From contig CAXNAD020000002.1 in the NCBI GenBank assembly GCA_964200185.2, forward strand, positions 1 to 64,000: 64,000 nucleotides of DNA, in the 5' to 3' direction. The translations under genes were made by a program, and so were the position numbers. The notes under the pieces were generated by a model. It made no database searches, was not told the origin of the DNA, and saw nothing but the letters and a program-made list of their open reading frames with translations. Shown here piece by piece: positions 5,000 to 37,185 of this stretch. Within the stretch, counting starts at the first letter, position 1, and each line of letters opens with the position of its first letter. This stretch comes from Choristocarpus tenellus KU-1152 (taxonomy: Eukaryota; Protista; Phaeophyceae).

Positions 5000-6861
5000 A
5001 GTCGAATTGCTCTCTAAACAATAACATTGACTCACCTCGGGATCCACCTCCAGATGTGTGCGATGCTGCCTATGGCATCTTCTTCCTACAGGGTGTAGGG
5101 CAGCTATTCCCGTGGAATGTCTTCATCAATGCTGAAGATTATTTTCGGCGACGACTATGCGGCACTCCTTACGAGAAGAATTTTGAGAACTTTTTCTCAA
5201 TAGGGTACAATGTAATGGCTGTTCTTGGTCTGGGTTTCGTCCTCAGGTGCACACTTTGACTGCCCTGGGTTTATGTTTTGTTTATTAGACATCCAGGTGC
5301 CTGCTGATACAGTTTGAACGATGACGTGACTGCAACACATCTCACCCTTGTGTAACCGGACAGGTATCAGCGGAGATTCAATCAGCGCCTTCAAGTGCTT
5401 GGTGCTCTTTCAGTCTCAACATTGGTGTTCATGATGTCCATGCTGCTGGTCCTGGTCGTTGAAATGAGCGGAACAGTCCTGTTCAATGTCACCATGGTTC
5501 TTGTGTCAATTTCGGCTCTTGCAGTGGCATTTTTGCAGGCAAGGTTTTCAGCAGAGTCTATCAAGCAAGAGTGCAGTCTGGATAGCAGCAGTTGTTGTAC
5601 TTACCATTGTGTGGGCAAGAAAGCAAACCCAGATGCCCTGTACCTTATGCCATTTTTTTTGCCTTCCACATTTTTTTTATACTGTTTTTGGTTTTCGTGC
5701 TATACTTTGTTGGAATTTGTTCTCATCCTCTTAAGTAACCATCTATGTTCTATGTTGTGTCAGGGAGGACTATTTGCTTTTGCTGGAGCCTTTCCACCAA
5801 GATATACCCAGGCCATGATGCTTGGACAGGGGCTTGCAGGGCTTTCTGTTTCCATTGCTGGTCTTTTTACCACTCTTTCTGGGCCAGATGCCACAGAGTG
5901 CGTATCTGATGAAGGGTTCGGAATTGACTTGACCTCTGTAAAATCCCAAACAGAATGCAAGTCATATGAAGTTGATATTAGTAGTTTGGTGTACTTTGGA
6001 ATAGCTTGTGGAATTCTGTTGGCCTGTATGATATCCTTCCCAGTCCTGGAACGCCTGCCCATCCCTTTGGAGTACACAAGGAATACTACTCCATCTAGTT
6101 TGGAGTCTGTTTTGTCGGAGACTCTGGAGGCACAATCATCTTTGATGAAGAGTGAGCATGGGGAGAGAGAGAGAGGATGGATATCACCCATTGAGGATTC
6201 CCGAGGATCCCTTCACTATTCCCAACAATCTATCCTGGAGGAGCATGCATTGGATGATACGGTTGTGAACCAGGATAAAAATAATTTTAGAGGGTCCAGG
6301 GGAATCATGCTGCAATTTTCCGGCTTGCAGCCCCTTGTTCCATTTGCTGTTGGTGTTTTTAGTACCTTCGCAGTGACACTTGCTTTGTTCCCTGCTACTA
6401 CATCCAAGATCATGTCTTCAAGACAGTGCATTCCCGGTCAGTCAAGGTTTTTTGCTGAAGATGTCTTTGTTATGTTTTCATTTGTGAGCTTCAACTTGTT
6501 TGATTTCATTGGGCGATTGGTTGCAGGATTGCCTCAACAACTGTTGTCTGGGCACATGTTGTCCAGTATGGCAGCTGCACGAGTTGTGTTCATCCCCCTA
6601 TTTCTTGCTTGTCGCTTACAAGGGTCAAGATTTCCTCAATGGCTTCATTGGGATGTCTTCCCATTAGCCCTGATGCCCCTTTTCTCCTTCTCAAATGGCT
6701 TTGTGGGGAGTCATTCTATGATGGCTGGACCACATGCTGTTTGTCCACAAATGCGTGATTTTGCTGGAACATCAATGGTCTTTTGTCTCTCAATGGGACT
6801 GCTGGTGGGTTCAGTCTTGTCTTTCTTTACTTTGTACTTCAGCACAGGATCTTTCTCCTAA
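5000..6861 (+). CDS. Equilibrative nucleoside transporter (ENT/SLC29 family); start exon not resolved
   Basis: Exons ~5000-5246, 5364-5538 and 5764-6861. ENT motifs: FFLQGVGQLFPWNVFINAEDYF, LQGGLFAFAGAFPPRYTQAMMLGQGLAG, VTLALFP, FNLFDFIGR, ARVVFIPLF, FSFSNGF. Many hydrophobic segments. Intron 5539-5763 is GC-AG. Confidence 0.93.
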
Positions 6862-7112: not shown

Positions 7113-10100
7113 TCACACAGCACCATGTGCCAGCATGACATCAGCCACTTTCATGAAGCCTGAAATAGTAGCGCCTGCCCAACACAATTTTCGTAATGAG
7201 GGAAGGAGAGTCAAAACAAGTTTATAGGCGAAACATGTCATGTAGGCATCATGCACGGTAAAATTTTCTGAAGGAGGGTAGTGCAGATAGTCACAAAGGA
7301 TCTAAATGATCAATGCTCACCTGTTCCATAGTCACCCCGGGCATTGAACTCCTGAGCAGTTGCCTTAACATCTTGAAAGATCATGCTCATCTGTTCTGCG
7401 ACACGGTTGTGGATGGTTTCCTTTGGTCCAAGTGGGTTGGTGCTCAGTGTGAGCCCACTGACAATGCCGCTTCCTGCTAATGTGGCCTTGTGTGGTGCAA
7501 ACACCAATCCTCTTTTGCGGAAAACTGCCTTAGCCTGAAAAAAAAAGGCGAGTCATGGTACAACAAAAAGATTGAACTGATGGTGAAAAAATTCATACCT
7601 TCGAAGAACAGAAGCTGATAAAACTACCCCTACAAATATGAAACATGAGGAAATAAGCACAGAACATCAACATGGTGTTTGGTGCTGGACATTTCTTATT
7701 CATCTATACATAAATGGGGAGCATTACCAACTAGCTTCTCGCCAATGCCCCACAAACCTTCAAAACAGAAATAGTTACAAAAAGACAAAAAAAATTCCTC
7801 TTCAACTTCAATCCAAAGGTCCTAAAATACCTCTAGCACTAAGAATATTCCCTCTTTTGCTATTTGACAACTTACGGCTTTGCTGCATGGATTATTGGCT
7901 CCCTCTATCACTGCCATGCACCCAGTATCTGCCAAAAGTGTGGCAGCAGTCTCTGCAAAGGAATGTGGCAGTGGCACCAGAAACAGGACAAATTGAGCAC
8001 CAAAATTGGTTAGAAGTTCATTTTACGTAACTAAGGGCTCACACCACACTCAGTGCGACTTACATTATCTCTACAAATACTATCTATCTCACCATCAATT
8101 TCGTTCCGATGAGAGCAAGGGAAGACCAGATCACACGGGATGCCAAAGATGTTAGAAGGCTCCTGTTTTGGTAGGAAAGAGGTAAAGAGGGCAGGAAGGA
8201 GGGGGGGGGATTGGTGTCTACTATTGTAGTTTGTTTTTTGCCAGTTCAGATCTGGGCAGAGGGGAATTTTATGAAACATCTCAAATATGACACTGGGTAT
8301 CCATGATGAGCTAAGGCTTGCTACCGGTGTTTCTCAAATAGACCTGGTACTTGGCAGTAGTGGAAGCAATGATGTATCGGCCCACCCTTGCTCCTCTCTC
8401 TGACTTGATCTTCACGATGGTACGCAACTTGGCAGAGTCAATTCCCTGGTAAGATATTTAGAACATAGTACAGAAATCAGCATGGTGGAACAGACCCCTA
8501 CTTAAAAATATTAGAGCACATTCAACAAAGAGTGTGCTGTTTTCAGTGAGAGGTAGAACTCCTGAGTTTGATTCTGAAGGGTCAATAAATATTATGATCT
8601 CCACTAAATTGAACACAAGGGCTGACCATCTAAACCAATTTCAGGATCGACCTTGAGTCATTACTGAAACGATATAAACCCCAAAAACAAATGAGATAAT
8701 TTCAGAAGCACTTCTGGTTCACATGCACCTCAGGTTCATAGATGTGCCCACTTGAGTCTGAGAAGGTAAGTGGGATCGCTCCAAGCTGTAGCAACTTTTC
8801 AGCTGCATGGACTGCAACCTGGCACAATGGGATGAGAGTCAAAGTAACAGCGTTCCTGTTTAATCGCAAGATGTGTGGAAACACAAGAGCTTTTGCTTGC
8901 CAAAATAAAAAATTTAGGTCTGTAGCAAACACCAGAGGATCTTGTAGAGCACTCCCCATTAAACAAGAACAAAATTGCCCAGCAAAATCCACGCAGATAT
9001 ATTTTCATATCCATCCACGTACTAGTCTGTTAAAATGTTTTTCCCACGCACCTTTCCACTGCCAGTGATGAGGCAACGCTTTCCCTTGAGTGAGTCTCCC
9101 TTGTCTTCAAGAGCACACTTGGCAAACTCCACAACACCATAGCCAGTAGCCTTTGGAACAACCACAATGTCACAAAATAAATTGAATCTGTGAGGGACGA
9201 GTTTTATCTGCACAACTTGGTAACCACCAGAGTCCAGATCTATCTGAACACATCTGACTACTTGGCTCAACAAACACACTTGCCCTTTTCTGAACAGATT
9301 AAATCAAAAAGACAACACAGTTTAATAAATAAACAAACCTGGGTACTAAAACAAGAGTATACTTACTGGGTATCTCTTGTTGGAAATATTTGAAGCTAAG
9401 GATATCCTACCAATCCATCTTTAACACATATTAGCAAGCATTTAAGTAAGTCAAAATACTCCCAGAATAGTTGACTGATAGAATCCCCTAGAACATCACT
9501 TCATTAAACCAAACAAACACTAGCCACAAAAACTGTGTCTGCTTAACCATACTAAGGTGGATAACAGTTCAGCATAATTTTCTCCCATTACCTTCACTTC
9601 TCTGGATAGAATATAGTTTAGTTTAATGCATTTCTTAAACAGCGTACATTGTGGTGTGATGTAACTTCCTCTGAAATACACAAACTGTTCCACAATCCAC
9701 AGAAAATACCAACACAATTAATCTGTATAGTGAGCTTGTGAGCATCACAACTTACCTCAGGGTAGAAGTGAGTGCCACCCCAAAGCACACCTCGTCCCCG
9801 CTGTGCCACATGGTCATTGATGCGCTTGTACTGCCCATAGAGATACCCAACCTGAACATGTCAAGAACACAATATTTCAGGATTACAGTATTCAAAGCTG
9901 TTAACATCAAGTTGCCAAATGGGACAATCGCCAAATATATCTTGCATCTATTAGCAGATCAAATTTACACAGATGCCTCAAAACACCACTCAAAATTGTG
10001 AGGGTAGGGAAACCTGGGTTTACCTCTGGGACTCCCACGCCATAACCCATTGCTGGGATGTCAAGATCAGGACCAATATACTTGGTGAGCTCTGTCATGT

Positions 10101-12818
10101 AGGACTGGCAGAACCTATCGGAATATTGAATTGTGATAATATAAGTATCAGTACCGGTTGTGTTTCAGGTCATACGAGTTTATCACATCTTGCAAGCAGT
10201 CAAGAATCCAGACAGGTTGGGAGGTGTGAGGCAAGCCATATACTTGACACAACCACCATTCCACAAGGGCAGATGGTTGCAAAACTATCTGCTCCGGTGA
10301 ATTAGTAGTATCTCAATATTTGATGAAATCAGACTGGGAATCTACCCAGCAAAATCCTTGGGTCATCACCCTGAACTGTCAACCTCAATTTTTTTCCCAG
10401 TGAGCCTGTACTCTGGAACTCCCTAACATTCTACATTTATCCTCATGCCGTAGGGTGTTGGGGAAATGGTTCAGGTGGGATTTGATTTTATAACCTCTGA
10501 TTTGATCTCAACATGAGAAGCCGCTATAACACTAGAGCAGTTAGTCTCATGGACTGCTTTGCCACTCCCTACAGCGGGAGGACAAATATAGAATGAGAGG
10601 GGAGGTCTGCAGCTCAATAGGAGATTATAAGATTGAGATGGACTGCTTGGGGAGAGTGCACAAGTAGTTGGGTGATTACCCATGGAATACGATAGAGGTA
10701 GGTTCCCAGTCTCTAATTTTTTCAAATATTGAGATACTCTTTCATCAGGAAAGACAATTGCACAGCTATCTACCCTGGCGGAACAGTGGTATCTCAATGT
10801 TCGATACTTAAGTAGAGAAGTCAAACTGGAGACTTGCAACAAATTGTTACGCTTTCATTTCACATGTATCCAAGAACAAAAAGGACCTTACCGTACGGGA
10901 AACAATAGGAGTGAAAAAACACATTTGTCACTTTAAGAGAGCATACCTTTGAATCTCTGCCTCACTCTTGTTATGTGGATTGAAGTCAGCCCCTCCAACT
11001 GCTGCCCCCAAGTTGCAACCCGTTAAGGCATTGCTAAACACTGTTTCCATACCCAAAGCCTGATAAGAACGTCAAGATGGAGGAAAATACACAAGAGATA
11101 TTCTGAGAGTACTATTCCAACCTGCTGCACACGACACACTCTCTCAACATATCCAATAAAATACAAACAGAATAGTTGAAGGCATTCTTAGTTATCTGTT
11201 ATCTACCTTGAGGACATCACTGTTAATCCCACCACTGAAGTGTAGTCCACCCTCATATGGCCCCAGAGCACTTGAATACTGGATCCTGAAACCACGGTTC
11301 ATTCGAGAATTGCCATTGTCATCCAGCCATGCCTGAGCAAAACCATTCACAATTCCCAATAAGGTTGAAATGTGAAAAGCGTTTCAGGTTTGGTTGATGC
11401 AACACTAGAGTCAGCGACCTATACTTATTGCCTCCATGTTCACCAAACTCGTTTAACCCAAAATGCGTAATCTAGGCATCAATTTGCACATTTCATGTCA
11501 ACATGCAACCATCATGGCATATATGTCTCATCATTGATCTACAACATGGAATGCTTGGCGCTGAGACTACCAAGATCACCTCCATTACCTCAGGTTCGAT
11601 TTTATGTATGTTGTGATTCCTCTTGCCCCAAACGTAATTAGCTATGCCTGGACCATCCCAACCTCTGAGACCTAAATATGTTGAACATTACTCTTCCAGA
11701 ACTTGTCTAATATATTATTGTAAAGTGGGGCACATCCACTGTAACTTATGTCCAGGTACTGACCACACGGAACTGGATAGCTCGTTCTGGCTCCAGGAGT
11801 TGCTTGGCAATCCAAGCATATTTGGGCGCCCTATCAAACACAGGCGCCAATGCTGGAAGGGTATCGCTCAGTGACTCAAGGAAATCCTCGGAGTGAGGGT
11901 CCTTCCGGCGCGCTTCGCTCAACCTGAAATGAGGATCGGTGCCCGAAAGAAAAAATGTCGAAACTGAGTGTACACGAAGGTAAACCCACAGGCACACGAT
12001 TCCCACGCCTTCAGGATATTTAGTGATATTGTTCATGACCTAACGGTGTTTGTAGTTGGAGAAAACATAATGCAAGTCGATAAGAGGTCTTTACAAGGTT
12101 AACAGTATCATTGACAAAAATAGAGTACTCACAGCATGTCCGTTGCCTCGGCTCCTGTCTTGAAGCGCTGGTCACCCTGCCACCATCAGCCAACCGATGA
12201 GAAAAAGTGCAATTTATAAGTAGACGGTTGGTCCGACCAAAACTTCTAGAGTGTCAAGGGGATCGCAATGTCACAGATGGGTATGTACCACGACTGGTGT
12301 TGTGGAGACTTTAATGTGAGGTGATTGTGCCCTGATTTGTAATCACCCCGCCCCAATTCAAATCGATGTCAGCACTTTACGCATACCATACGATGAATGC
12401 TGGAGAATATACAGAAGCCAGCCTACATGTTACCTTTCCACACAAAGAAATAGGTTAGGAAGTAAGTTCAATCAATTACGCTCACCTCACGCCGGAAAAG
12501 GGGCTTGTTTCTCCACGTTTTCTGGAAGGGGAGACAAAGAATCGAAGTGGACAGTGTAAGGTGAGCACAATCTTTGGAAAAGAAGGAAGTCCATGTTTTA
12601 TGTTGTGTGATATTTACTGGATTAACATGACGTCTCATGGGACCTCTTCTCAAGCCAGACGCACATCATACCTGACCAGACCGGGATCCATGGACACCAC
12701 CAAATGTATAAAGTGGTGAAAGGGTTTCTGCCTTTACATTAAGCACTGCGGCTGTGTGGTGCACGCTGCGAACGCCAACTCTCGAGGCGGCCTGGCGGGC
12801 TATTGGGAGAAAGCTCAT
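7113..12818 (-). CDS. NAD(P)-glutamate dehydrogenase-like protein (GdhA family, ~486 aa) with degenerate active site and a mitochondrial-presequence-like N-terminus
   Basis: 15 phase-consistent GT-AG exons: 12818-12738, 12521-12486, 12176-12133, 11923-11764, 11332-11207, 11059-10947, 10114-10024, 9851-9756, 9150-9052, 8818-8729, 8445-8344, 8162-8093, 7952-7876, 7534-7321, 7174-7113. GDH motifs: LLEPERAIQFRVAWLDD, NRGFRIQYSSALGPY, PEATGYGVV, LKGKRCLITGSGKVA, FSDSSG, VIEGANNP, GFMKVADVMLAHGAV. The N-terminus MSFLPIARQAASRVGVRSVH is Arg/Ser/Ala-rich with no acidic residues. Confidence 0.92.
10252..10800. mobile_element. Foldback/MITE family B with ~90-100 bp inverted arms, in GDH intron 6
   Basis: The left arm ...GTATCTCAATATTTGATGAAATCAGACTGGGAATCTACC is the approximate reverse complement of the right arm GGTAGGTTCCCAGTCTCTAATTTTTTCAAATATTGAGATAC. 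Related copies lie at ~45.1-45.6 kb and ~62.65-62.95 kb. Confidence 0.7.
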
Positions 12819-14394
12819 GTTGTCTCCCCAACCAAGGCGAACACGTTTCTACAATAAGGACAACAGACCCCGTTTGAATTAACGAAATAGCTACGAGATT
12901 GAGAGACACAAAGCCTTAATCGAGGAGGTGACTGTGTACTGTTCAGCTCTCTGTCCTGGCAAGCAACAACTGATCCTCTACACAAACAGCTGCAACAACA
13001 GATACAACATGCAAGTACGTCTTCAGAAGGCCTTCCATGGTGTGTAATATCTTCTTAAATCTATGGAAACTTATCCGTTGTTGAGTCAAGCGAAGGTTTA
13101 TGCGATCATAGGGTCAGACCTACCACTGCACAACTGGTACTACCAGTATTTAGGGACGAGCCAAGTTTGCACTATATGCTCCTTGCGAGCAGGCGTGCGC
13201 AATGCCTCCATTGTTGTTTGAGGTGAAACTGATAGGCAATATGAATCTGAAAGATTGGATGGCGAGTGAGGTTGGTTAGATCAAGGACGTTTCAGCACCT
13301 CATCCAGGACTCATCATTTGAACAAGGCGAGTTGTTTTCAGTTGGTCTGGAGGGTGTATTAATCAATGGTTTATATATATATAATCATACCCCATTCGTT
13401 TACTCATAGATTTGCCCCCAGTGCCATTGTGCATGTTGTATTTTTGAGCATATAAATATTTCCACCTCACTCTGCCTCACCATGTTGGAGACCTTGTCTC
13501 CCTGATGCTGCTTCAATTTTACAGCAGTGTGATCATGTGCCATACATCGGTAGGTGTTCTGGTATGGTATTTTGAACCAAGTACTGCCTGGTCCTTACCT
13601 ATTCTAGATACTTTGTAACATCGGGCCATGCCAAGTTTGTTTCCTGTAGGTAGGCCTGTGAGCATGAGTTTATATTTGTCGCACGTCCCAATACGTGGAG
13701 ATAAGACTAGTATGAGCAGGAAGTCAAGCGGAATTACATTTGTTAACTTCTGTTGTGCTACGTAATTGTTGACTATCAATCCAGCTTATTAATTACTGAT
13801 GTTCCCATTGTTGTATGAAGCCTGATATGTGGATGGACACTGTTTGGAGTGCTTTCCACCTAAATACACCAGTATGTCACTTTTTCCTGAGGAATGTTGA
13901 AAATCATCTTAGATTTGTACTATTTGAGTCCAGTGCATTCTATTCAGGCAGAAAATAAATGCTGCACCCACTACACAGGTGAAGAGAATAGATTACCCAA
14001 CAAGCAGTTGCTCAACAAAACTATATGGTAGCATCCAATGTTGCTGTGGACACATGCCTTGATTGGTACTTACACCCTTCTCTGTCACCAAAATAGCAAG
14101 TTCCTAACATTCCCACAGCCAACGGGAAATAATGTTCATAGTTTGCAACCCTCTATGTGATAAATATATTACAAAGATATAGTCAGAATTTTACTTCCAC
14201 CCCCCCTTAACCTATGCGGAGTCCCACTTAGCATGCAGGGTACCAATCTTCTGTAAAGGAGAATGTCACATACAGCTTTGACAAAAGACTTATTCTCTCT
14301 CTGTGTATGCGAAACTCCCTGCAGCACATTTACAGTCACGAAAAATAGAGATAAAAGAATTTCCCAGGAATGAATTGCCTGTGATGTGCCACTA

Positions 14395-17300
14395 TCAATA
14401 GATCAACCGGTGCAAAATTGATGCAAAATTGTGACGCTGGTAACTGTTGAAGAGTACATTGTGAGCACTCTGCCGGATAATAGTGCACAACATATGGAGA
14501 CTCTGTGCCCCCTGTGGGACAGAGAGTATCAATTGGACCGCACGATGTTCACTTTCTCCTTCTTTAAGAAGATTGTCTGCAAGGAATTCAATGACAGTAC
14601 ACCAGCTTAGTCGCCTGTCTTTCGGCACACAGACCTGAAAATGGGAAGCACAGAACAACGATTGTGTCACATGATAGTAATGGCATGGATTTAGAAACCA
14701 ATTATCAAAAGACAAATTTTGCCAACTCTGAATCATTCGTTCATATAATTTTCAAGCGTTTTCTGTGAGATGTGAATCATATTGCACCCTTCACAAGTAA
14801 CTCATGCAGTTGCATCAAGAATCTAAAGCAATCTCTCCACAGCCATAAATAGATTCCTGATACTTACCCCTTCCATGAAAACTCTTTCCACTGCAGGTGG
14901 GGCATATGGGAAATGCTGTTGACAAGTGGCTTCTCCTGACATAACCTCATCAAGGTGTGCATTATCCTCTCCATTTGCCAAGATGCTCCCAATGTATTGT
15001 GCTGCATCCAATCCAAAGCACATTTCAAAGGCTGGACTTACACAGCTGAGCAAACCTTCCCGAAGGACTGACTTCTGGAATGCATGCACAAGGGCATTGA
15101 ACTGATGTACCACCTGGATAAGGTATGCATTTGATGTTTACTCATGATAAACAATCACATCGGTCAAAATCTTGTTTGAACAATACTTTCCATGACTACC
15201 TGTCAGTGGTTTCTCAGTTTTTCCTGCTCCCCACCGCATTAGTACAAAATATTTGTATCCCTTCCAATTCATTGTCATAATGCTCAGGAACCTCCCAATA
15301 CATGTTATACTCAGTCTCAAGCAAGATGTCTCTATTCACAACTAAAGCATCTCCCTGAAGATGTGATGTGGTGGAGTGTCAATGTGTGGACAATGCGTGA
15401 AGATGGGGTGGGTAAGAATACAAATACATGGATCTCACCTTAAATCTCTTTTGAAGTGTATGGTGTTTATATTGTATGTAGAATAGTTCACATGTTGAGT
15501 ATGTGTCAGGGGAATTTGAAGGGGTTTGGGGTGAATGCCCATACATTTAAAGTATAGCTCTGACTGATCAGGACCACCTTCTTTGCTTGGTATGTCCTTC
15601 CAATATTATTCCCATGGAATGATTGATACACCCACACCCACCCCTGACAATACAAATGGAGAACATGTAACATAGGTCCTGAACTTCTCAGAAGTGGATG
15701 CAACTCTTACCTGCTGGGGATCCAGTTTTGAGGTGCTACGTTGAACCATGTGACCCATACGCCCTTCACCAGAACTAACATGTGTGTTCTGTGTACCTAT
15801 CTTGCCTCTTGACATTTGCACAAGTCTGAAAGATATGAAAGAGGTGGTTGGCATTGTGCATGGCACATCAAGGCGGTGAATGGTAGGTAAGGAAGGTAGT
15901 TCAACAAGCAACTAAGCACCCAGTACCTTGTTCATTCCTTCTAATTGCAGGGAGTAGGTTGAAAGAGGACATAGTGTGGATTCTTTTTTCCCATTTGCAA
16001 GAACATTATCAACTAATAGTGTAATATTAATAAGCCAGAGATTGAAATGACAATGGAACAATGCATGCTATATACTGCGAACATGAAATCTTTGCCATAT
16101 CATTTTCTGATAGCCAAAGGGTATTTTTATATTTTGAAATATTTTAAACAGCAGGATTCATCTGCGCATGTAGAGAATTCAGGCGTAATCCAATGCTATG
16201 CTTACATTCAACAAGTAGAGGAAATAAATAATGCCCAAGCGTCTTGGTTCTGATTAGAGAAGATTGAATTGAGGTTAGCTGGTGTCTCCATCGAAGCAGC
16301 ACTAAAGTACTAGCTAGTACAACATCAAAGGAACCGAGTGCTCAAAAATATATCATAATATAACCATTGAGCATATTGTAGGTGCCCTGTGAAACCTGTA
16401 GAGAATCAAAGGGAACTAGACTTTGCTGTAATGGGAATGGAGATATCTCCCAACAGTGAGGAAAAAGTGTGTATTATTTTATGTCAAAGAATATACAATT
16501 CAATGCAGTGGGGTGTTGAAATACTACTGGCTCATACTGCCAGTTTTCTTGGACACACAGAAAGGAGGTGAACATTGCTGGCCTTGCAGATTCACTATCT
16601 CTGGTCTAATGCTCTTTGGCAAGTGAAATAGCTCTCCAGTGATGAAATGCCAGTGCTGGCTTGATACATACCAGCTCTTGGAGAGTATCTAACAAGCATT
16701 TTCCCCCTTAGAAGTACCAGAATGCTCAAGATAAGCAATGGGACATGACGAGTCACAAAGTCAAGGAGGGCTGATTTTACCTCAGGTTCAATGTTCCTCC
16801 ACTTGGCAATGCTAAGTTTCAAGGACATTTCAGAGGTTGAAGGGAAGGTAACAGCTCTACTTTATCTTGCATGCAGGTGGCCTGCTAACAAAAACGTCCT
16901 GCAACATAGTACAATAAAAATCTCAGAGGAATGTCATTTGGTACATCACACTCAAGAGATGCTGATAACATAAGCTGACAGGTGAATTCTTAAATTCTAT
17001 TGGTTCAGGGTGGTCATACTGGCTTCATACTTGGTAACTGTCAAGGTTGGAGGGTGCTCACTCTCCTTGTAGTTGAGGATTTAAAGGATGATTTTTATAG
17101 TAATACAGCATTATGAAATGATTAGATACCTAAACATTTGATACAGTAATAACATTATGCATGTAACACAGTGTCCATAGACAAGGTCACAAGGAACATG
17201 CACAGCCAAAGCAACTTTGAGGGGTCTGTGGTTGCGCTATTAGTAACCTCACTGGTAATTCATGGTACAAATGAAAAAATATATTAAAATCTTGTTCAGG

Positions 17301-20300
17301 GTCATGAAAAACTTCAAAACTTTTTATTTGCAAGTAAATTCTTTAATCATGCCAAATTATTTATTGATTATATATAATTAATTATTCTATCTTTTTTAGA
17401 TGCAATTTGTACTAAGCAGAGTTCGGCATAATACGTTTTTCTTCAATAAAATTCTGAATCTAAGTAAATAAATCAAGATGGACCGGTGGGGTAGCCTACC
17501 GTAACCATGCCTTTTGTTCAAGCAATTTTTTTATATGTTAATTTGTATTGAAATATTATAAAGCTACCAAAAAATAAATCTGAAATATATTGGCAGGGTT
17601 TAAATCAGAATTTACTGTAGTACAGTACCTGTGGCAGAGATTCATCAACTGTCGAGGTTCGACGACTTCACCAGCACTGATTTTCTTAGTTGGTGTGAAG
17701 GATGGAATGACCTTCTGGAGAATATTATGAACTGGTTCCATGCTGCCAGAATCTAGGTAAACTGCCCCTGGTAAATACAATTCAATGGCATATAAGTTCA
17801 ACCTGTAGTGCGACAGCAAGCGGGGCAAGTCTTTCAGTATGAACAAAGAGTAATGAACACCATAGCACACTTTCCCTAAATGCTTACCTAGGACAGCCTC
17901 AAAGCAGTCTCCAAGAATTTTTGTTCCCTCCAAAAGTTGTCCTTGACCATGGCGGATGAATGGTCGCTACCAGATAGTAGCGAAGAATAGTGAATGTTGA
18001 GGAAGTGTATGGGAAAATCAATTCAAGTTGACTCAATGGCTAATAATGTTGGACAGCTAGTATGGTTTTGGTGTGAGAATAGCTACATACATGAGACTTC
18101 CAACCTCAGTTGTCAATGTCCCTTTACATAATTTTCTAGGGCATACTGAAGGTATGTCGGTTACTCACTTCACTTCTGTAGTTTGAGGAAAGGATGTGTG
18201 TATGACATCTTAACAAGATGCACCCTGGAGATTGTTACTGATAACCCAAATAGTATCTTAATAGGTTTTGCTGAACTTAGTTCTTCAAATGGAGTGTTTG
18301 ACATACTCTGATTCTGATATCTAGACTCATGGATTACATATAGAATATCACTACTACTGTTAATAATGTAAAGTGGTATTTCTCACTGATGTATGGCGTT
18401 TCTTTTATGGTGTATGTTTTATGACATGTGCTCACTGTTTGAGACAATAAATCCTCATCTGGTGAGGGGCAAATGGGGGTTTTAACACCAATTAGAAGCT
18501 GTTTATACAATTGGCTAGAATAATTTGGTGTCCAGTTTCATGTTCACATCAAATTGAACAATTATCATTAGTGCGACCTGAGTTGATGGCAAAACAAGGT
18601 CTACTCTATGAGATGTGGGACTTGGTCCAGACACAACAAGGTTAGTTCGTTCCCACTGGTTCTAAGTCTGTGGTAGGCAAAGTGCATCTTGTACTGTGAT
18701 GTATGGTGCATAGTCAAGGCTAAGATGCAGAATCATATTGGCTTTGCATTCATTCTGGGATATGGTGAGTTTCCTTGTCACCCGGTCATAATAATCCATT
18801 TCCACTCATTTTCCATAGTTGAAATATATCTTTGACAGCATTTTGGAAACTTGAAGAGGCAAAAGAGTTCCACAATGTAGAATGTGGGGCAAAGTCCAGA
18901 GCAAGCATGATCCACTGTACTGCTCATAGCTGTGATCCCAACAGGATGGATAATATCTGCAGCACAAGAAAGCTTAACAATTTGTAGGTGGAAAATATTC
19001 CATGTAAGGGTCCCAATGACTTGCATGAGTTAATTGTTATGCCAGGGAAATGTTTTACCCAGTCCAGATCGCATACTTGTACGATATGCCTGGAATTCTT
19101 GCATTCATACCTAATCAGTAAAACATTTGTCTCCCAGATATTTCCACATCTCATTGAGATCCAGGGTTTCTTCGTATGCATCCTATCAAGCACCTTGTCA
19201 TCAACTCCATCTTGAAATTCCCTGTCTCCCAACACCATATCCACCGGGGGAAAACTACATACTGAGAGGGGATTTTGGGCACTGTAGTAAGAAATCAGTA
19301 AAATGCTGCCCCAGATTTTTATGGACAAGGGTGTTCCTTATCCCCTTGAAACACAGCTATATAGTAGTACCCACCACTTTAGTAGTGAGCACCATCACAA
19401 AGAGGGCTACTATATATCTCACCAACCACTGCATACCCTCACATCAAACCTTGGTCCCATTGTTCATTTTATATTGATCCCTAGATTACAAACCCCTGTG
19501 AGCTAGGTAGTGTTCCATTATTTCATCCACTGGGTTGATTTGACGAATACAATTATGTTTGAAAAAAAAATGACAGATGGTTGTTTTAGGAGAGAGTCAA
19601 TATATTTGACCCTTTATAGTACATGAACTGTACAATCAGAGATGTGTAAAAAAAATATGCAATTTCCATGTCACGTCATAACAGCAAACTCTTTAGGAGG
19701 AAAGGAATGCTGACATGTACTGGATAAGGATTGATCGGTGGTGCATGGGCCGCACGCGTTGAGCACCAAGCGACCTGGCAAGGTATTACATTCCGATTAA
19801 CAAAATCTGGTAAAACCGACACAATCAGACTCTTAGGAGACAAAAGTCAGGGGTATGCTCAAATGTCTTCACCCACTGGGAGTAATTTAGGTAAAGTATT
19901 TTAGGTAACGCGAAGGAGATCAGAAACAGAAGGGCACCTCCTCGGGTGGGGGCTCCAGCAAGGAACTATTAAAATGTGAAGAAGGAAACATTTAATAATT
20001 TCTCAAGGTTGTAAACGTGGACGCTGGTCAACATAAGGACTCAAAAGTTGCTGGACCTTGGAGCATCTATAGCCCTACAATGGGTGTCCATGAAGTGGAG
20101 TAGTGGTCGGTGGAGTGCATGAGATTAGTGGCGGTGACTGGAAAAGCTGTGCAAGAGGAAAGGGGGGGAAGTCCTTCCTACAAGATCGTAACTACGTGTT
20201 TAAAGAAAACTATAAAGGATACGAAGCGACTCACCAGGTTCAACCTGTCCGCAAACGCAGCACATGCACTCGCGCTGACAAAGCGTTGACGCACAATAGA

Positions 20301-23900: not shown

Positions 23901-24771
23901 TAATGGAAAGCAGCATGGTCGAGGAGATCTGCGCAGTAGCAGAGACAGGAGCAAGGAAAGTAACAAAACAAGTCGCCACAGGGCAAGCAGGAGGAGGACC
24001 GATGAGAGCAGCGAAGGAGATGATGCTGACAGAGCAAAGGAATACCTTAGCGAGAGTGATGAAGAAAATGGCCTGGGGTCTAGTACTGATGGTGCCAGTG
24101 ATGCACAGGTGACTCTATTCTTATTAGAGACAGCCACCTTTACTATAGAATCAAAGAATGACACGTACTGTACTGGTAGGTGGGGTTGACTCTGTTGTCA
24201 TACCAAAATTGTCTTGAGAAGGGCAGTAGGTGTCTTGTGTGCTTTTTCCCATCTTCCCTTCATCAATTTGACAAACAAAAAGTAGCTCAGCAATGGTGAT
24301 ACAATATTCTATACCAGCACACAGAACGTCAAACAGAAGTAAATCTCTATGTTCAGAATGTATCCCCATGAGATTTTCTTCAGAAATGCTTCATCTCCAG
24401 TATTTGTATTATATGTAGTGTTGCCTGCATTTTTTTGTACACAAAGTGACCCATGGTCCTATCCTCCGACCCCAGTGAAATTTTTAGGAGGTGAGACCCC
24501 AAGATCACCCCCTCCTTTATTTCTTAGTCATAAACATATATATACACAATTTTTGAGTCTCCTGCTCAACATTCTTTGAGTGTTTCCTACAGTATGAGCC
24601 TGTCTGCCAGAGGTCTGGTAGTGATGTAGTTCCAGTGCAACTATGCATGAGTGACTTGAGACCATCTTTATGTTGACACTGACCCTGACGGTCCTTGAAC
24701 AGGCTAGACTGGAACGAGAGGACAACTTGCGCAAGATGGCACTAGCAGCTCTGGCTAGAAGGTCTAGTTGA
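20919..24771 (+). CDS. SRRM1: PWI-domain, Arg/Ser-rich splicing factor (SRRM1/SRm160-like), ~519 aa
   Basis: Exons 20919-21029, 21136-21258, 21684-21854 (GC donor), 22073-22170, 22366-22516, 22614-22738, 23397-24108 and 24703-24771. The N-terminus MSSGFFRGTNTEQDSRFGD...KVNMKKVNTDVMKRWIAQRITSLLGFEDDIVV...LDPKRLQLQLTGFLEK...FMEELWGLLVDAQNS..GIP is the SRRM1-type PWI domain. An RS/RD-rich exon follows, and the C-terminus has LRKMALAAL. Confidence 0.92.
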
Positions 24772-25399
24772 TTGTAAAGTGCACTTGTTACACTCATTGG
24801 CACTGGAAGAAGTGGGTGCTCTTGTCAGCCAGGCAAAAAAGGATTGGGAAGGAATTGCACTATGCACCATTGCTGAAGAGTGAAATATCCATGCAGAAAG
24901 ACCATCTCCATGGAATATTTTGCCATCCGGGTTAGTCATCACCTCAGCTTGTTCCAGCCTCCCCAGTTATAGTGGCTTGACAGTCCTCAGGCCGACAAGA
25001 GTTGGCAGCAAAGCATATGCATATCCTGGTGGTGTCTAGAGGAACATATAATTATCATAATTGAGACAGACAACATCCACAGTTCTTAATGAACCCCATC
25101 TCATGGTACCAGTGCTTTAGTTCAAATTGTGAAAATGCAGTAGTTTCCTAGCTTGACCCCGTGTACCCAATTTGTGGTATTTTAGAAGATTTTTTGAGAT
25201 CTATGCTAATTGAGCTTGAAAAGATCAAGCTCTATATTTTTGGCTAAAACAAAGCCAAAAGTTGATACTTCCTCGGATGCCTCACATTTCCAACAACCTG
25301 TATACAATTGCCATTGCTCAGTGCATCTTCTGGGTGGAGAGCAGTTTTGGAGAGCACTCTGAGGCATGCAAACAATCGGAAATCCCTCATAATGTGAGA

Positions 25400-26030
25400 C
25401 CCTGGCCAAATACCATACCTACACTAGCCAAAGCAAATTGTGATGGACTCAGAGCTATGGTGTGGAGTACACATCAAGTGTGGTGTCAAGGTCATTGTCA
25501 GGACACCTTCTAGACAATTCTGCAAGGGATCAGCATGATGTTAGCACCTTCGATGAAACATGGAATATATTTTTTCAAGTGTACTTCACTTGATGACCAG
25601 ACTGAAATGATCAAGTATAGGAATTTGAACTACATGTCATTTACTGAGGTGGAACAAACTAGCCATTTTGTAATTGTCTGGAAAAATGCAAAGCTTTGAA
25701 ATCTCTTTCAGCCATTGGTTCTTGGTTGTAAGCAATTTTACCTACACTGATGCGCTTTGGGACAATGTAATTTTAATGTTCTAGATCTTTTTATTACTCT
25801 TGTGAAAAAAAGTTCTTGATGGAAAGTGATGCTGACCTTTTGCGAAAAATGGAATATTGTTTAGATATGCTCTACTTTGACACTATGAAACAGTCCTTGA
25901 TTAGAAGCTCTACAGAAACTATCACAATACTGGCAGGCTGAGGAAGGAATGCAATAAGGGGATTGTATAGAGCGAGCTTTAGATTGCTGAACGTATTACT
26001 GTTCACAATACAATCTCCTAAAATAAATTA
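25400..26030 (+). mobile_element. Possible decayed hAT-like transposase relic
   Basis: Broken reading frames give, in the expected order, HQVWCQGHCQD (CxxH-like), ILPTLMRFGTM (TRW/TRF-like) and DCIERA/RLLNVL (C-terminal ERxFS-like). Many stops and frameshifts. Confidence 0.3.
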
Positions 26031-26445
26031 AGATCTTGTGGAAGTACTTGAGAGGGTTTTGTTGGTATGTGTGCATACTGGCCATTGAGAACATTCAGGA
26101 CAAGACCTGCATGTTGAGTGGTTCTGTTGCAGAGCACGTTGACCGCCCTCCTTCGTACACAAAGAAGACTATTGGAGAGATCTGACCCGTAAATTTGTAC
26201 TCTTGGGAGGTCTATCCCCCCATCAAGACAACATCCACTCTGTGATAGGGTAGCTTTGGTCAATGCAAGCTGATTATGACGGAAGACCATGAAATAAGAA
26301 GAGTTTTTCTGTGGACCAGGTAAATGTGACAGCAATGGGTCAGGGGTTGGTCCAAGTGAATTTTGATCGGACCAGTCCAGAGTCGTCAGAGAGTATAACT
26401 GGATCAGACTGTGGGCTGGCCCTGGTTAAATTTGCCTTGATAGGG

Positions 26446-26799
26446 CTTGAGTCTATCTCATATCTTTCACCTGGTAAGGGATTAAAATCTGCTCATTTTG
26501 ATGAAGCTAGAAAGTGTGATGAGCAAAAATGGGCCACCAATTTTAAATTAATGAGTAAGCTTGGAACTGCTGAAATTTCAAGCTCTTATATACAAAATGA
26601 TCGTTCTAGGAAATTAATATATAATGGTTCGAAGATTTCAGGCGGTGAATTATCTAATTTACTAAATGTTATTTGGCTTACTCCTCAGATGGAAAGTTTA
26701 TTTTTAGGAGGTGCGTCAACTAGAAGAAAATTTCTTGATAGAATAGTTTATGGTTTTGATTCAAAACATGCAAAAAATATAGCAAAATATGATCATTAT
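26446..26799 (+). pseudogene. recF: Internal fragment of a Rickettsiaceae-like RecF gene (118 uninterrupted codons, lacks Walker A and the C-terminal half)
   Basis: LESISYLSPGKGLKSA...MSKLGTAEI...YNGSKISGGELSNLLNVIWLTPQMESLFLGGASTRRKFLDRIVYGFDSKHAKNIAKYDHY. RecF motifs LEAIS.L.PG.GL, WLTP.M and RR.FLDR are present. SKLG.AE and YN.SKI...ELS recall Rickettsia RecF from memory. Intronless, ~31% GC by hand count, AT-ending codons. Confidence 0.92.
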
Positions 26800-26958
26800 A
26801 AATTGTCGACTCCTTTGAGTTTTTTAACTCCCTGTGGGAATTGACTAGTCTTTAACCGCTCAATCAAAAGAGATATTTTTAGTAAAAACTTCTTATTGAG
26901 TTTTTGCAGATCTTTTTTTAACATTTTTAGCTAATTCGATTTTATAGGTTCTAGACAA
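26797..26958 (-). pseudogene. relE: N-terminal half of a RelE/StbE-family type II toxin (one +1 frameshift in an A7 run, truncated at the recF junction)
   Basis: TTG start at 26958 gives (M)SRTYKIELAKNVKK(fs)DLQKLNKKFLLKISLLIERLKTSQFPQGVKKLKGVDNL, matching the RelE pattern Y.I......K.L.KL......I...I..L...P.P.G.KKLKG...Y. It ends just before the expected YRIRVGDYR. Confidence 0.8.
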
Positions 26959-26960
26959 GG

Positions 26961-26996
26961 TTAAATACCTAATTCTGATTTAACCTGATCCCAGGA
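26961..26996 (-). pseudogene. C-terminal tail of the cognate antitoxin gene
   Basis: Reads SWDQVKSELGI*, similar to the W/LEEVKKELGL* ending of many antitoxins encoded upstream of RelE toxins. Its TAA stop lies 2 nt before the toxin TTG, an operon-type spacing. Confidence 0.55.
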
Positions 26997-27402
26997 ATCG
27001 GGCTGAAACGAAGCCATAACGATGGTAAACTTGTAAAAATGTGTTATTGCAGAGGCAGACCAGGGCCATTGAGATTGGAACTGGACTGAGTCACCGCCGC
27101 TCATCAATATCATTAGATAAAACACATTTAAGTTGGTAGATTATTCTTGAACCATACTTTACAATCTGCTGTTGAAAGTGGAGCTTTTCGAATTATATTT
27201 CCACCATATTTGAGGTAGTCTCACAGGGCTACAAAATGAAAACATAAAATTTGATTTAACAGGGACATTCCAGGTCCATGAGGGATTATATCTGGACCTG
27301 ACTGCAAACCGACCCAGGTTAAACATTTCTAAACAGGACTGAACCAGAGTCATAGGGATAGTAAGCAGACTGGGCCTGTGAGCTGGTCTGGGTGAAATAT
27401 GG

Positions 27403-27618
27403 CCTAATAAGGGTGGAGTAGGTCCATCAAGACTGTACCCAGACCACGTGGTGGGTTGGACCATGGACCCGGCCCAGTCTGTCCAATTAGCTGCTGGTCT
27501 GGTCTGTCTACCTAATAAGGGTGGAGTGGGACCATCAAGACTGTACCCAGACCATGTGGTGGGTTGGGCCATAGACCCAGCCCAGTCTGTTTGTCCAATT
27601 AGCTGATGGTCTAGTCTA
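27403..27618. repeat. Two-copy 108-bp tandem repeat rich in GGACC/AGACC/GGTCT motifs (transposon subterminal-like)
   Basis: The unit starts CCTAATAAGGGTGGAGT at 27403 and again at 27511, and the copies are highly similar. It is followed by AGCCCTG, a possible element end. Confidence 0.85.
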
Positions 27619-28699
27619 AGCCCTGCACCAAGTCTCTAATACAAAAGAAAGCTATGTTTGGCTTTTCTGGACTAAATGAAAATGTTGCTTAGCACACCAT
27701 CAGCATCACATATTTCCAAGAATGCAACAGGGATGGAGAGCATGGAATACTTATTTTTGAAAGCTCTTCAATGCTATTGGTGGAAGTTCCCAAGGGGTGG
27801 AAGTTTTCTATATGTTACTGAAGAGGCGTCAATTCCAACCATGCTCTGTTTAGAGCACTGAGCACTTGAACTCTTGGGATATTTGTACTGATCATTGAGC
27901 TCTATACAGAAAGGTATCCACTCTAAAACAGAATTGCATCCCAACCTCCACACATTGTAGGAAGTATTACAGATCTCAGATCTACTGGTCCAACAGTAGC
28001 AATTCAAAATCACTTAGAAAAATTGTGATAAGGCCCCAAGAACAGGATAAAAACCATTTTATTTCTCTTGTAAGTTTTGCTGTAAAATTGGAAGCAAAGC
28101 CGGGATCGCTTTTGCTATGTCAAGAACCTTTTTCACAATGAGGTTGAATACAGGACCTATGGCAGGATCTACAACATAAACAAGTTTATGTTGCTCCACC
28201 AACAGTATAGTTCAGAATTATTTGTGATAAATAACTTACTATATTTTTTATTTTATACTGGTCCAGTCAAGAAAACTTAACAATTTTGTTCCTCCTCAAA
28301 ATTGAATGCCACCAAATTAAAACACCAAATTAGTGTCTACCTCACCTTCGAAACTTGTTTCTGGCTGTAGCTGTCAGAACATATTACATGTAAACAAATA
28401 CTGAGCAGTGGTGCAAGATACTTCTTCTAGGACTTCAACTTGATCTCAACTCAGAATGAAGCATTGTTTCAAGACTCTTGGTCACAGCCTTTGCTTTTCA
28501 GAATCATACAATCCTTCTGTAAGTGTGATACAGTTGGGAGACAGGGAAGATAGTATGAGAGGCACTAATCTTTGTGTTAGATCAGACTGTGATACCAATG
28601 GGAACATTGTTTTATCCAAAGTCCTTGTTGATTGTTTCCAGGAATTACTAAAACTAAGTCGTAGTATCTATTCTTGAAGATGCCGCAGAAATGCAAGAA

Positions 28700-34781: not shown

Positions 34782-37185
34782 TCACCGCAATTCAACGCAG
34801 AGTCGGCTGATGAGATCTTGTCGAACTCGCTCCTGTGTTTGGTATGGGAGAAGTATTGCTATTATAATTATTATATATACTCAAGCCACGTGCAACACAA
34901 CTTGAAAAATGGAAGAGCATTATCTTGAGCAGAAAATTCGTAACATAGATCCCAACTCACCTTAGCACTCAAAATGAGCACCTGAATGATGTAGAATGTC
35001 TTACCTGAAGCTTGTCGACTTCCTCATTTGTCAGAGATCTACTCATGGAACGATATGTGATGCGGAAGCAGTTACTCTGCCTCTGAGTCTTGGGGTGTAC
35101 AAAAGTATCCACAAGCTGGACCTGTGATTCGATGGCAATACATTGAACAAACTCAGGATGCGAGTAACTCAACAATTGAGTCAACAGTTCTTCTATCATG
35201 CAGCTATATCAAAGTGAGTGCTCACTAGGAGATCCAGCTTGCCTCGCCACCAACACCACTACACCATTAAGTCACATCTGTGCACAAAAAACAAAATGGC
35301 AAAGGAGCACCTCCTCAACCAGGTCCCCTGCAACATCACGAACAACCTCAAACATATCATTGTTATGAAATGTTCTCTCAGCTTCTCTTGGTAGCCAAAA
35401 GCTCACATCCTTGAAACATGGTGGATATTTGCTGTATGGTGTGAATTGAGATATTGTCCCTGCCTGCAGTACAAAGAGCCACAGTGAGAGGGTCAGACCA
35501 GCTCAATCACAACATTATGCTCAAGCATTGAGATGTCATAAAATGTTGATAATATAGTGCAATAAACATTCAAATAAATAGTATCAAGTAGTGACAACAA
35601 AAGGCACCCTTGCTGTTGGACCACATTTTTCATGTGTACCTTAAATTGGCTGGTAAACCGTTCATCATCTGACCAGAACAAGCGAATATCTGGGATTGAA
35701 AACAATACCATCGCTAGACGTTCCAGGCCCAAACCAAAGGCCCAGCCAGTTTCCTCTTGACGACCAGAATTTTGCATCACTTTTTCTTGAATGACTCCAC
35801 AACCGAGCACCTCCATCCAATCTCCCTGCCAATTAAATAGAAAGTAAGGAGTGGAACATTGCAGTTGATCTCAATCTTACACCTAGGCAACATAGGAACA
35901 GCTTAGTAAAAAATATGGCTATAGGCTATCACTATAGAAGGGAGGAAATGCTGAGGTTCAGGCAACAAAAGAATGAGATTGAAAATGATTTTTCCATACA
36001 TTGCAGCAAATGGATGGAATATTTAGTGCAAGATCCAGTAACTCTAGAATCTGATGTGGTGTATGACATCGACAATAAGACTGCAGTTGAAGGCGACATC
36101 TCACCCTGAAAAGTATCTCCAGTTCTGCTGAGTGGTGAGTGAATGGAAAGTAGGCATCCACCCAACGCATTTCCACGTCACCAAAGAGGTGCCTTGCCAG
36201 GCCCTCCAGGGCATTCTTGAGGTCACTGCTCACAATTGCTACTCTCGCCTCTATGTCAGTGGTCGGCGGAACCTGAGAGGGGAAGGCGGAGACAAGGGTC
36301 AAGACGTATCCAGACACCAACATGGTGATACATAGTTGGGTTTGTCGGCAGGCAACCTTTGAGGCAAGCGTGCCACTAAGGGTCTTGCAGGAGGTTTCTA
36401 TCTCTAACAGGACACCTTAATCAATACTGCAAGATGATATACATTCATTCAAAAACAATCTTGAGCATCTTTCCGACATTGCGTGTATCCAACGGAATTT
36501 GACAACGATGGCAGGAAAGTGAGGGTATGTGCAGCCGCCCACGCCAATAAAAGAGTGTCCAGACTCACCTCGTCGTCGCGGAACACACGGACTCCCTCCA
36601 TTTGGTGAAACACGGGGTAGTGACTTCGGTCGATCTCATCACGTCTGTACACATCTCCACACACTAGAAAGGAGTTCTGGCCCTGCATCAGAAGTGTTGT
36701 CTGGTGTGCGCTAGTGTGACACCTCAAGACTCTCGCTTCATCTACATAATAAGTATCAGTGGGCTGGCGGCTCACGTGATCCACAGGGATGAGAAGGGAA
36801 TCAAAGTTGTCATACACTGATACCACAGGTGGAAGGTCATCGAACACCTGGAAGTTGGGTTGTCCAAGCAGAGTATTGGGCTCTTGAAAGTAAACCTCGA
36901 TCCTGCAACAAGTTGGGGAATATCGGTATAACATAATTTACGTCTCATGAGAGCTCAGGTCAACCACCCCTGCTTGTATCGCATTTTCAATCGGACTAAC
37001 CTCTCCTTGATGATGTTCAGGGGATGCCCTACACGCAAGTGCAGGTTCTTCCCCACCTTCGCTGCCACTGATAGCGAAACGTTATTCGCCGGGTCATTGG
37101 TAATCACACGAGTAGCTGTACACAGGGGCCTCAGCAATGAGTTTGGCAATGGTCGGACCTTTCCCACTACCTTCCACAACATCAT
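34782..37185 (-). CDS. FARS2: Organellar (mitochondrial-type, monomeric) phenylalanyl-tRNA synthetase, FARS2-like
   Basis: Exons 37185-37001, 36902-36569, 36272-36105, 35825-35640, 35463-35311, 35121-35005 and 34832-34782. Motifs: [129 protein letters not shown], and the anticodon-binding segment [27 protein letters not shown]. Confidence 0.96.

Follow-up and report, generated by a model that had tools for sequence, protein, structure and literature searches.

Truncated bacterial recF and toxin-antitoxin genes joined tail to tail in a nuclear contig of the photosynthetic eukaryote Choristocarpus tenellus

Organelle DNA occurs in nuclei as NUMT and NUPT mosaics, in which non-adjacent fragments are concatenated at microhomologies. 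DNA of an intracellular bacterium, Wolbachia, is likewise found inserted in the nuclear genomes of insects and filarial nematodes (nuwts), among them species from which Wolbachia has since been lost (cf. Kondo et al. 2002). The nucleus of Volvox carteri contains one rickettsial region, about 9 kb long, whose four genes mostly keep their bacterial order (Kawafune et al. 2015, PMC4324946). That region includes partial genes, the host lacks the symbiont, and the insertion has been read as the trace of an earlier infection (PMC4324946).

Here we analyse a 64,000-nucleotide stretch of a Choristocarpus tenellus KU-1152 contig (CAXNAD020000002.1, positions 1 to 64,000; hereafter the window), in which positions 26446-26999 are a 554-bp AT-rich stretch of two bacterial pieces placed end to end, one from recF and one from a toxin-antitoxin module (Table 1). 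We put a probability of roughly 0.87 on the reading that this insert is bacterial DNA that entered the nuclear genome and has no function, analogous to a NUMT or NUPT but of bacterial source, with the recF and phd/yefM-relE/parE pieces captured together at a chromosome break. Neither piece is functional, since the RecF piece is without Walker A and two thirds of the protein, only a frameshifted N-terminal half of the toxin is left, and the antitoxin is reduced to 12 codons. The locus is a relic of a familiar type, and what is new here is another example, in a photosynthetic eukaryote; a literature search found no paper describing these insertions.

The comparison with described systems holds in part in each case. 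Like the Volvox region, the insert is Rickettsiaceae DNA, including partial genes, in the nucleus of a photosynthetic host of non-phagotrophic type without the symbiont; unlike that single region of about 9 kb, it measures 554 bp, combines two non-adjacent pieces and is one among many very short fragments. With nuwts it shares the form of numerous short, decayed endosymbiont fragments in chromosomes, a fossil record of infection thought to arise by end joining, but nuwts derive from Anaplasmataceae and reside in animals, whereas here the donor is of the Rickettsiaceae and the host a photosynthetic eukaryote. NUMTs and NUPTs resemble it in their non-adjacent pieces, microhomology joins, neutral decay and AT-rich islands, and differ in their source, an organelle in their case and a facultative or lost bacterium here.

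Table 1. Features of the insert and its flanks in the window, and matches to related bacterial DNA on other host contigs
Feature	Coordinates	Strand	Remarks
Left host flank	26200..26445		GC ~0.41-0.46; single match in 164-Mb assembly
recF fragment	26446..26800	+	118 open codons, ~residues 38-155 of 369-376-aa RecF
Inner junction	26797..26800		4 nt TATA common to both pieces; recF homology ends 26800, toxin homology ends 26797
RelE/ParE-superfamily toxin fragment	26797..26958	-	TTG start, codons 1-53 of ~89, plus 2 nt of codon 54
A7 homopolymer with one extra A relative to intact homologue (frameshift)	26913..26919	-	pairwise alignment, single gap
Spacer of 2 nt (CC), antitoxin stop to toxin start	26959..26960	-	same length in intact operon
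Phd/YefM-type antitoxin tail	26961..26999	-	last 12 codons DSWDQVKSELGI and stop
Right host flank	27000..27380		single match in assembly
Conjugative-element match	C23053:2916-2996		90%
Conjugative-element match	C2457:468-610		70%
Conjugative-element match	C974:13930-14001		79%
Matches to 20-kb chunks of the G001 chromosome (among others)	C20511:1606-1823; C13471:2-131; C17223:3821-3905; C1337:3313-3367; C4922:5791-6069		

The first-pass annotation of this DNA had described about 550 bp of AT-rich sequence amid host DNA, and the composition agrees: GC is 0.31 in the recF piece and 0.305 in the toxin-antitoxin piece, against 0.41 and 0.44 in the flanking kilobases. Each element that it named was found, with coordinates slightly corrected; it was mistaken in placing the right end at 26996, as the bacterial DNA stops at 26999, three bases further on. 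By origin the insert is bacterial, as befits a nuclear insertion of endosymbiont DNA.

The plus strand of 26446-26799 translates into 118 codons with no stop. The NCBIfam RecF profile TIGR00611 matches this piece (E 1e-15, profile positions 38-158 of 339), bearing out the annotated run of 118 uninterrupted RecF codons. Its score of 57.8 bits falls below the whole-protein cut-off of 172 bits because the piece covers no more than a third of the gene. The piece is orthologous to full-length recF ORFs of 369-376 aa in Rickettsiaceae MAGs, with 81-83% protein identity. It begins directly after GPNGSGKTNI, the Walker A motif kept in relatives, and stops at about residue 155; Walker A, the C-terminal signature and the Walker B region are all missing from it. 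What survives is part of a gene and does not amount to a RecF protein.

Peptides of the recF piece were used to scan one genome per species across 185,579 species, and all eight confirmed loci (8/8) lay in genomes titled Rickettsiaceae, at 61-85% protein identity. Over 130 Rickettsiaceae genomes, identity declines from 81-83% in three MAGs (G001-G003) to 69% and then down to about 45-48%, a level that includes many complete single-contig genomes. In a maximum-likelihood tree of the 118-residue region, whose taxa were Rickettsiaceae members only, with no outgroup, the recF piece falls in a clade with the same three MAGs (support 100/97). Sequence comparison thus supports a Rickettsiaceae donor for recF at the family level, as the first-pass annotation had proposed, and the phylogeny it had recommended gives the placement it expected, within a family-only tree. 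Among the five MAGs nearest by recF (G001-G005), the Megaira polyxenophila probe MegPol436 (PMC3748036) finds no 16S target, its sole match, with 2 mismatches, lying outside the rRNA genes. The result bears on M. polyxenophila; other Megaira clades may still include the donor.

At the DNA level the nearest MAGs are only about 80% identical to the recF piece. A closer relative is a 5.9-kb aquatic-metagenome contig from run X5, which is 96% identical (13 differences in 355 nt) over exactly 26446-26800 and whose recF runs on both ways, into GPNGSGKTNI (Walker A) upstream and MRERNKSL downstream. Because this contig diverges into continuing recF at each end, both breakpoints of the recF piece are fixed. 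Eight of the 12 listed differences between the two are synonymous, and the sole derived change in the piece is Ser84, which is Gly in every reference; we infer that the inserted copy has decayed very little and that the divergence is mostly ordinary bacterial divergence. The insertion may therefore be young, and the description of it as fairly recent stands as far as this low decay goes, recency being relative only. Fourteen further metagenome or metatranscriptome runs from eight studies, with sources in soil, seawater, biofloc, biofilm, salt marsh and sponge, share 5-7% of the words of a 1.7-kb stretch, as much as a recF of about 96% identity, such as that of X5, should give; contigs were examined for X5 only. 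In one of the nearest MAGs, a long-read assembly (G004; L009 5001-5353), a frameshift interrupts recF some 52 codons into the aligned region, marking either a symbiont pseudogene or a consensus error.

Read on the minus strand, the second piece gives DSWDQVKSELGI, a stop, CC, a TTG start, about 14 codons and then, after the change of frame, 40 more that end with GVDNL. In the JGI metagenomes, a degenerate pattern for QGVKKLKGVDN matched a single contig (L024), which carries an intact operon of an 81-aa antitoxin ending in DSWEQVKSALGI and an 89-aa toxin. From 26999 to 26797 the window is 88.2% identical to L024 in DNA (179/203), with a single gap at the A7 run. The antitoxin tail aligns with the end of the 81-aa antitoxin, and the spacer context is TAA-CC-TTG in the window versus TAA-CA-TTG in L024. 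The intact toxin passes the Pfam family PF05016 (40 bits against a 23-bit cut-off), and the solved structures nearest to it are RelE proteins; the intact antitoxin matches PF02604 (E 1e-10) and TIGR01552. The annotated succession of an antitoxin-like tail, a 2-nt gap and the N-half of a RelE-type toxin with one homopolymer frameshift is borne out by the alignment to this operon. Since contigs of two further host runs (X2 and X3, described below) carry the same A7 run, with no gaps relative to the window, the extra A is not an assembly error.

Searched against Pfam by itself, the 42-aa toxin piece gave no match at E <= 1, so its identity rests on homologues. Several Rickettsiaceae genomes contain ORFs of 96-106 aa that are 40-48% identical to the 42 residues; these ORFs belong to Pfam ParE_toxin (PF05016), and in every case a PhdYefM antitoxin (PF02604) lies upstream, separated by a spacer of 3 nt. 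The 42-aa piece was unmatched in the five MAGs nearest by recF. The two toxin reading frames, searched separately and never joined, align in order with a 96-aa ParE_toxin ORF in a Rickettsiaceae genome (L010:1462-1749, PF05016 at E 1e-11), at 48% identity over residues 14-53 and 47% over residues 1-19. The RelE/ParE relationship on which the first-pass annotation had staked its reading of the minus strand is thus found by way of these PF05016 homologues, though not by the piece alone.

What remains of the module is its middle. The toxin retains codons 1-53 of 89 with a +1 frameshift and is without its C-terminal half, short of a complete fold; the antitoxin, with 12 codons left, is without its DNA-binding N-terminal domain, and its position and 2-nt spacer are as in the intact operon. 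In gene order, a 2-3-nt spacer, the PF02604/PF05016 pairing and a place beside traD and a TraA_Ti relaxase, the module is like the Phd/YefM-RelE/ParE modules on Rickettsiales-type conjugative elements. Unlike intact modules, the window keeps the boundary only, 12 antitoxin and 53 frameshifted toxin codons.

A 98%-identical toxin is present on Logan contigs of 5-8 kb (L025 and L026), where the gene order is traD, phd, relE, Rpn/PDDEXK_2, Toprim and a TraA_Ti-type relaxase; from this traD/TraA_Ti gene order we assign the phd-relE module to a conjugative element. A make-up of TraA_Ti/TraD and Rpn/PDDEXK is typical of Rickettsiales conjugative elements. The TraD of the element is 56-58% identical to multi-copy Rickettsiaceae TraD versus at most 48% in 400 sampled Alphaproteobacteria, with equal bit scores; the equal from outside the family is a small-genome alphaproteobacterium. 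The PDDEXK_2 protein of L025 is absent from MAGs G001-G005 at E <= 1e-30. To judge from these comparisons, the donor of the toxin-antitoxin piece would be Rickettsiales-like and is not tied to Rickettsiaceae, its nearest relative being an unassigned metagenome contig at 88% identity. A Rickettsiales donor had been claimed for the whole insert; the claim is sound for recF, at the family level, and may hold for the toxin-antitoxin piece, whose element has equal TraD bits outside Rickettsiaceae.

At the inner junction, recF homology reaches 26800 and toxin homology 26797, so the pieces are joined tail to tail with 4 nt that could come from either, in line with the annotated break of both genes at about 26797-26800. 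Past 26797 the intact L024 toxin reads on as YRIRYGNYR..., where the window switches to recF. Because recF continues past 26800 in X5 and the toxin continues past 26797 in L024, the nearest relatives, the junction is not a bacterial arrangement; with both genes intact across the breakpoints in relatives, the earlier description of a mosaic of two non-adjacent donor loci holds good. We read the TATA overlap as a probable microhomology, deduced from relatives rather than from the donor itself.

The insert meets host DNA at 26445/26446 on the left and at 26999/27000 on the right, and it is itself single copy in the 164-Mb assembly. A 41-kb contig of run X1, which is probably the source of the assembly, is identical to the window. 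Two further samples of the study that produced X1 gave X2 and X3, each assembled on its own; the data are Logan contigs, not raw reads. Contigs 26150-26861 and 26847-27828 of X2 and 26180-26720 and 26701-27297 of X3 cross the three junctions with no differences or gaps, the former of each pair crossing the left host junction and the latter the right. The word depth of these spanning contigs is like that of neighbouring contigs. As all three host runs come from one study and are represented by contigs only, depth and strain independence are weak. A GT..AG joint at 24929/25321 in X2, about 1.1 kb upstream of the insert, indicates that X2 behaves like RNA and that the flank is intron-bearing eukaryotic DNA. 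The host is photosynthetic, as judged by at least 41 matches to chlorophyll a/b-binding proteins (LHC) in the genome.

No contig in X1-X3 places recF in a bacterial context at >=90% likeness (contigs can drop rare sequences), and the 164-Mb assembly has no second recF. The proposed nuclear insertion in host DNA is therefore upheld by X2 and X3 contigs that span every junction, by the upstream intron and by single-copy flanks. The checks that the first-pass annotation had suggested came out in its favour: separately assembled contigs of one study cross both host junctions, depth in X2 and X3 is flank-like, and the same data contain no symbiont copy, whether as a bacterial-context recF contig in X1-X3 or as another recF in the assembly. 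The data contained no allele with an empty site, against which microhomology or filler at the two outer junctions could be judged. Carriage by a transposon was rejected, given single-copy flanks and no terminal or target-site repeats around the insert.

Related bacterial fragments occur elsewhere in the same genome. Within the window, 9 kb from the recF insert, the minus strand of about 17190-17442 holds a Rickettsiaceae-like RNase D fragment that reads VFHDPEQDFNIFFHLYHELP against VFHAPDQDFDIFYNLFGELP in a MAG ORF and is interrupted by stops. Its DNA identity with G001 and G003 is 67-69%, and decay or divergence seems to have gone further than in the recF piece. On contig C1543, a 4.5-kb island (8500-13000) with a GC of 0.21-0.32 lies between stretches of host-like DNA. 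The island is a patchwork of at least 12 pieces of 50-115 bp, about 80-88% identical to G001, whose matches are spread from 5 kb to 1.39 Mb along that 1.48-Mb Rickettsiaceae chromosome. It also has two pieces (97-98%) of the L025 PDDEXK_2 gene, about 3 kb apart and out of order, and C1543:9624-9700 is a piece of the conjugative element inside this island of Rickettsiaceae fragments.

Five more matches to the 8-kb contig of the conjugative element were located on other host contigs, three of them at 90-98%. Two arbitrary 20-kb chunks of G001 returned 10 and 3 matches, which lie on different host contigs; roughly half have identities of 81-91%, and the weaker ones (65-76%) may be conserved host or organelle genes. 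A very rough extrapolation from these two chunks suggests hundreds of such fragments genome-wide. Tentatively, and at somewhat less than even odds, the insert may be one of several hundred shards of 50-350 bp from a single Rickettsiaceae symbiont, chromosome and conjugative element together, that lie as scrambled mosaics in an alga now without the bacterium. Were this true, it would be the most fragment-rich bacterium-to-alga transfer on record, and the shards together could be used to describe and date the vanished symbiont, a close relative of which is still present in aquatic metagenomes.

Several other accounts of the insert have to be set against this evidence. The assembly is fragmented (27,310 contigs) and the evidence consists of contigs rather than raw reads, as would suit a chimeric assembly, or a host contig that had absorbed a read from bacterial contamination. 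Yet three separately assembled runs give identical, unbranched junction contigs at flank-like depth, both bacterial genes are truncated, and the junction was not found in bacterial relatives. With spanning contigs from separate runs, single-copy flanks and no second or bacterial-context recF, a chimera or contaminant is very unlikely, and we give it next to no weight. We also place very little credence in the fragment having been taken into host use, for instance within a transcript or within the 177-codon open frame at 26311-26844. The RNA-like X2 has a depth of about 8 here, a spliced contig (24929->25321) runs towards the insert on the plus strand, and the recF frame is open. Against host use, the X2 depth is about 25-fold under that of the neighbouring exon and no higher than in the surrounding non-coding DNA, the 26311-26844 frame has no Pfam match, and the RecF piece has no ATPase motif; the open recF frame is explained by the little decay since insertion.

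We favour an origin in which two short DNA pieces of an intracellular Rickettsiaceae-type bacterium would have been captured in one event at a host chromosome break. One piece, of 355 bp, would come from the middle of the chromosomal recF, and the other, of 203 bp, would span the antitoxin-toxin boundary of a phd/yefM-relE/parE module that lies beside traD in relatives; the two would have been joined tail to tail by end joining at the 4-nt microhomology. On this reading end joining is the presumed mechanism, a single donor probably supplied both pieces, and that donor presumably lived inside the host. The recF-relE junction could instead have pre-existed in a rearranged, pseudogene-rich donor, with one 554-bp fragment transferred. 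Rickettsiaceae with amplified conjugative elements do hold many truncated genes, as seen in multi-copy, stop-containing traD matches, and the recF of G004 is itself frameshifted. Nevertheless, the nearest relatives keep both genes intact across the breakpoints, and C1543 strings together at least 12 tiny pieces whose counterparts in the reference chromosome lie hundreds of kb from one another. These two observations favour joining in the host and make a pre-existing junction quite improbable.

Joint capture of pieces with separate sources, be they two bacteria or one bacterium plus an unrelated plasmid, is unlikely but keeps some plausibility. The toxin-antitoxin element was not found in the MAGs nearest by recF, its TraD is by bit score no closer to Rickettsiaceae than to the small-genome alphaproteobacterium outside the family, and identity to the nearest reference differs between recF (96%) and the toxin-antitoxin piece (88%). 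Set against these points, GC is equal in the two pieces (0.31 versus 0.305), the element has the make-up of TraA_Ti/TraD and Rpn/PDDEXK expected of Rickettsiales, and its pieces are scattered in the host, one of them (C1543:9624-9700) within the Rickettsiaceae island.

Under the favoured reading of joint capture at a chromosome break, the locus records a past Rickettsiaceae infection of a photosynthetic eukaryote, with breakpoints known at single-base precision and, for comparison, a living relative at 96% identity. Taken singly it is a dead relic, and its value lies in the genome-wide set, which could also show how foreign DNA gets stitched into algal chromosomes. For annotators and decontamination pipelines it carries a warning that AT-rich 'bacterial' matches in this assembly are truly nuclear.

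Some other features of the window were recorded alongside the insert. To its right, 27403-27617 consists of two tandem units of about 108-112 bp that are 93% identical over 80 nt, with a GC of about 0.52. In X2 the exon at 24699-24930 has a depth of about 219, after which coverage continues unbroken at about 8x from 25321 through the insert (25321-28015), possibly from a minor isoform, read-through transcription or DNA carry-over. On the minus strand of 35496-36937, two open segments are 37-41% identical to a protein of G001:140.7-141.3 kb and probably belong to a conserved host gene. The plus strand of 5395-6858, for which an Atlas search returned Eukaryota and no narrower group, encodes a single-exon equilibrative nucleoside transporter of 488 codons (PF01733, E 1e-46), a host gene.
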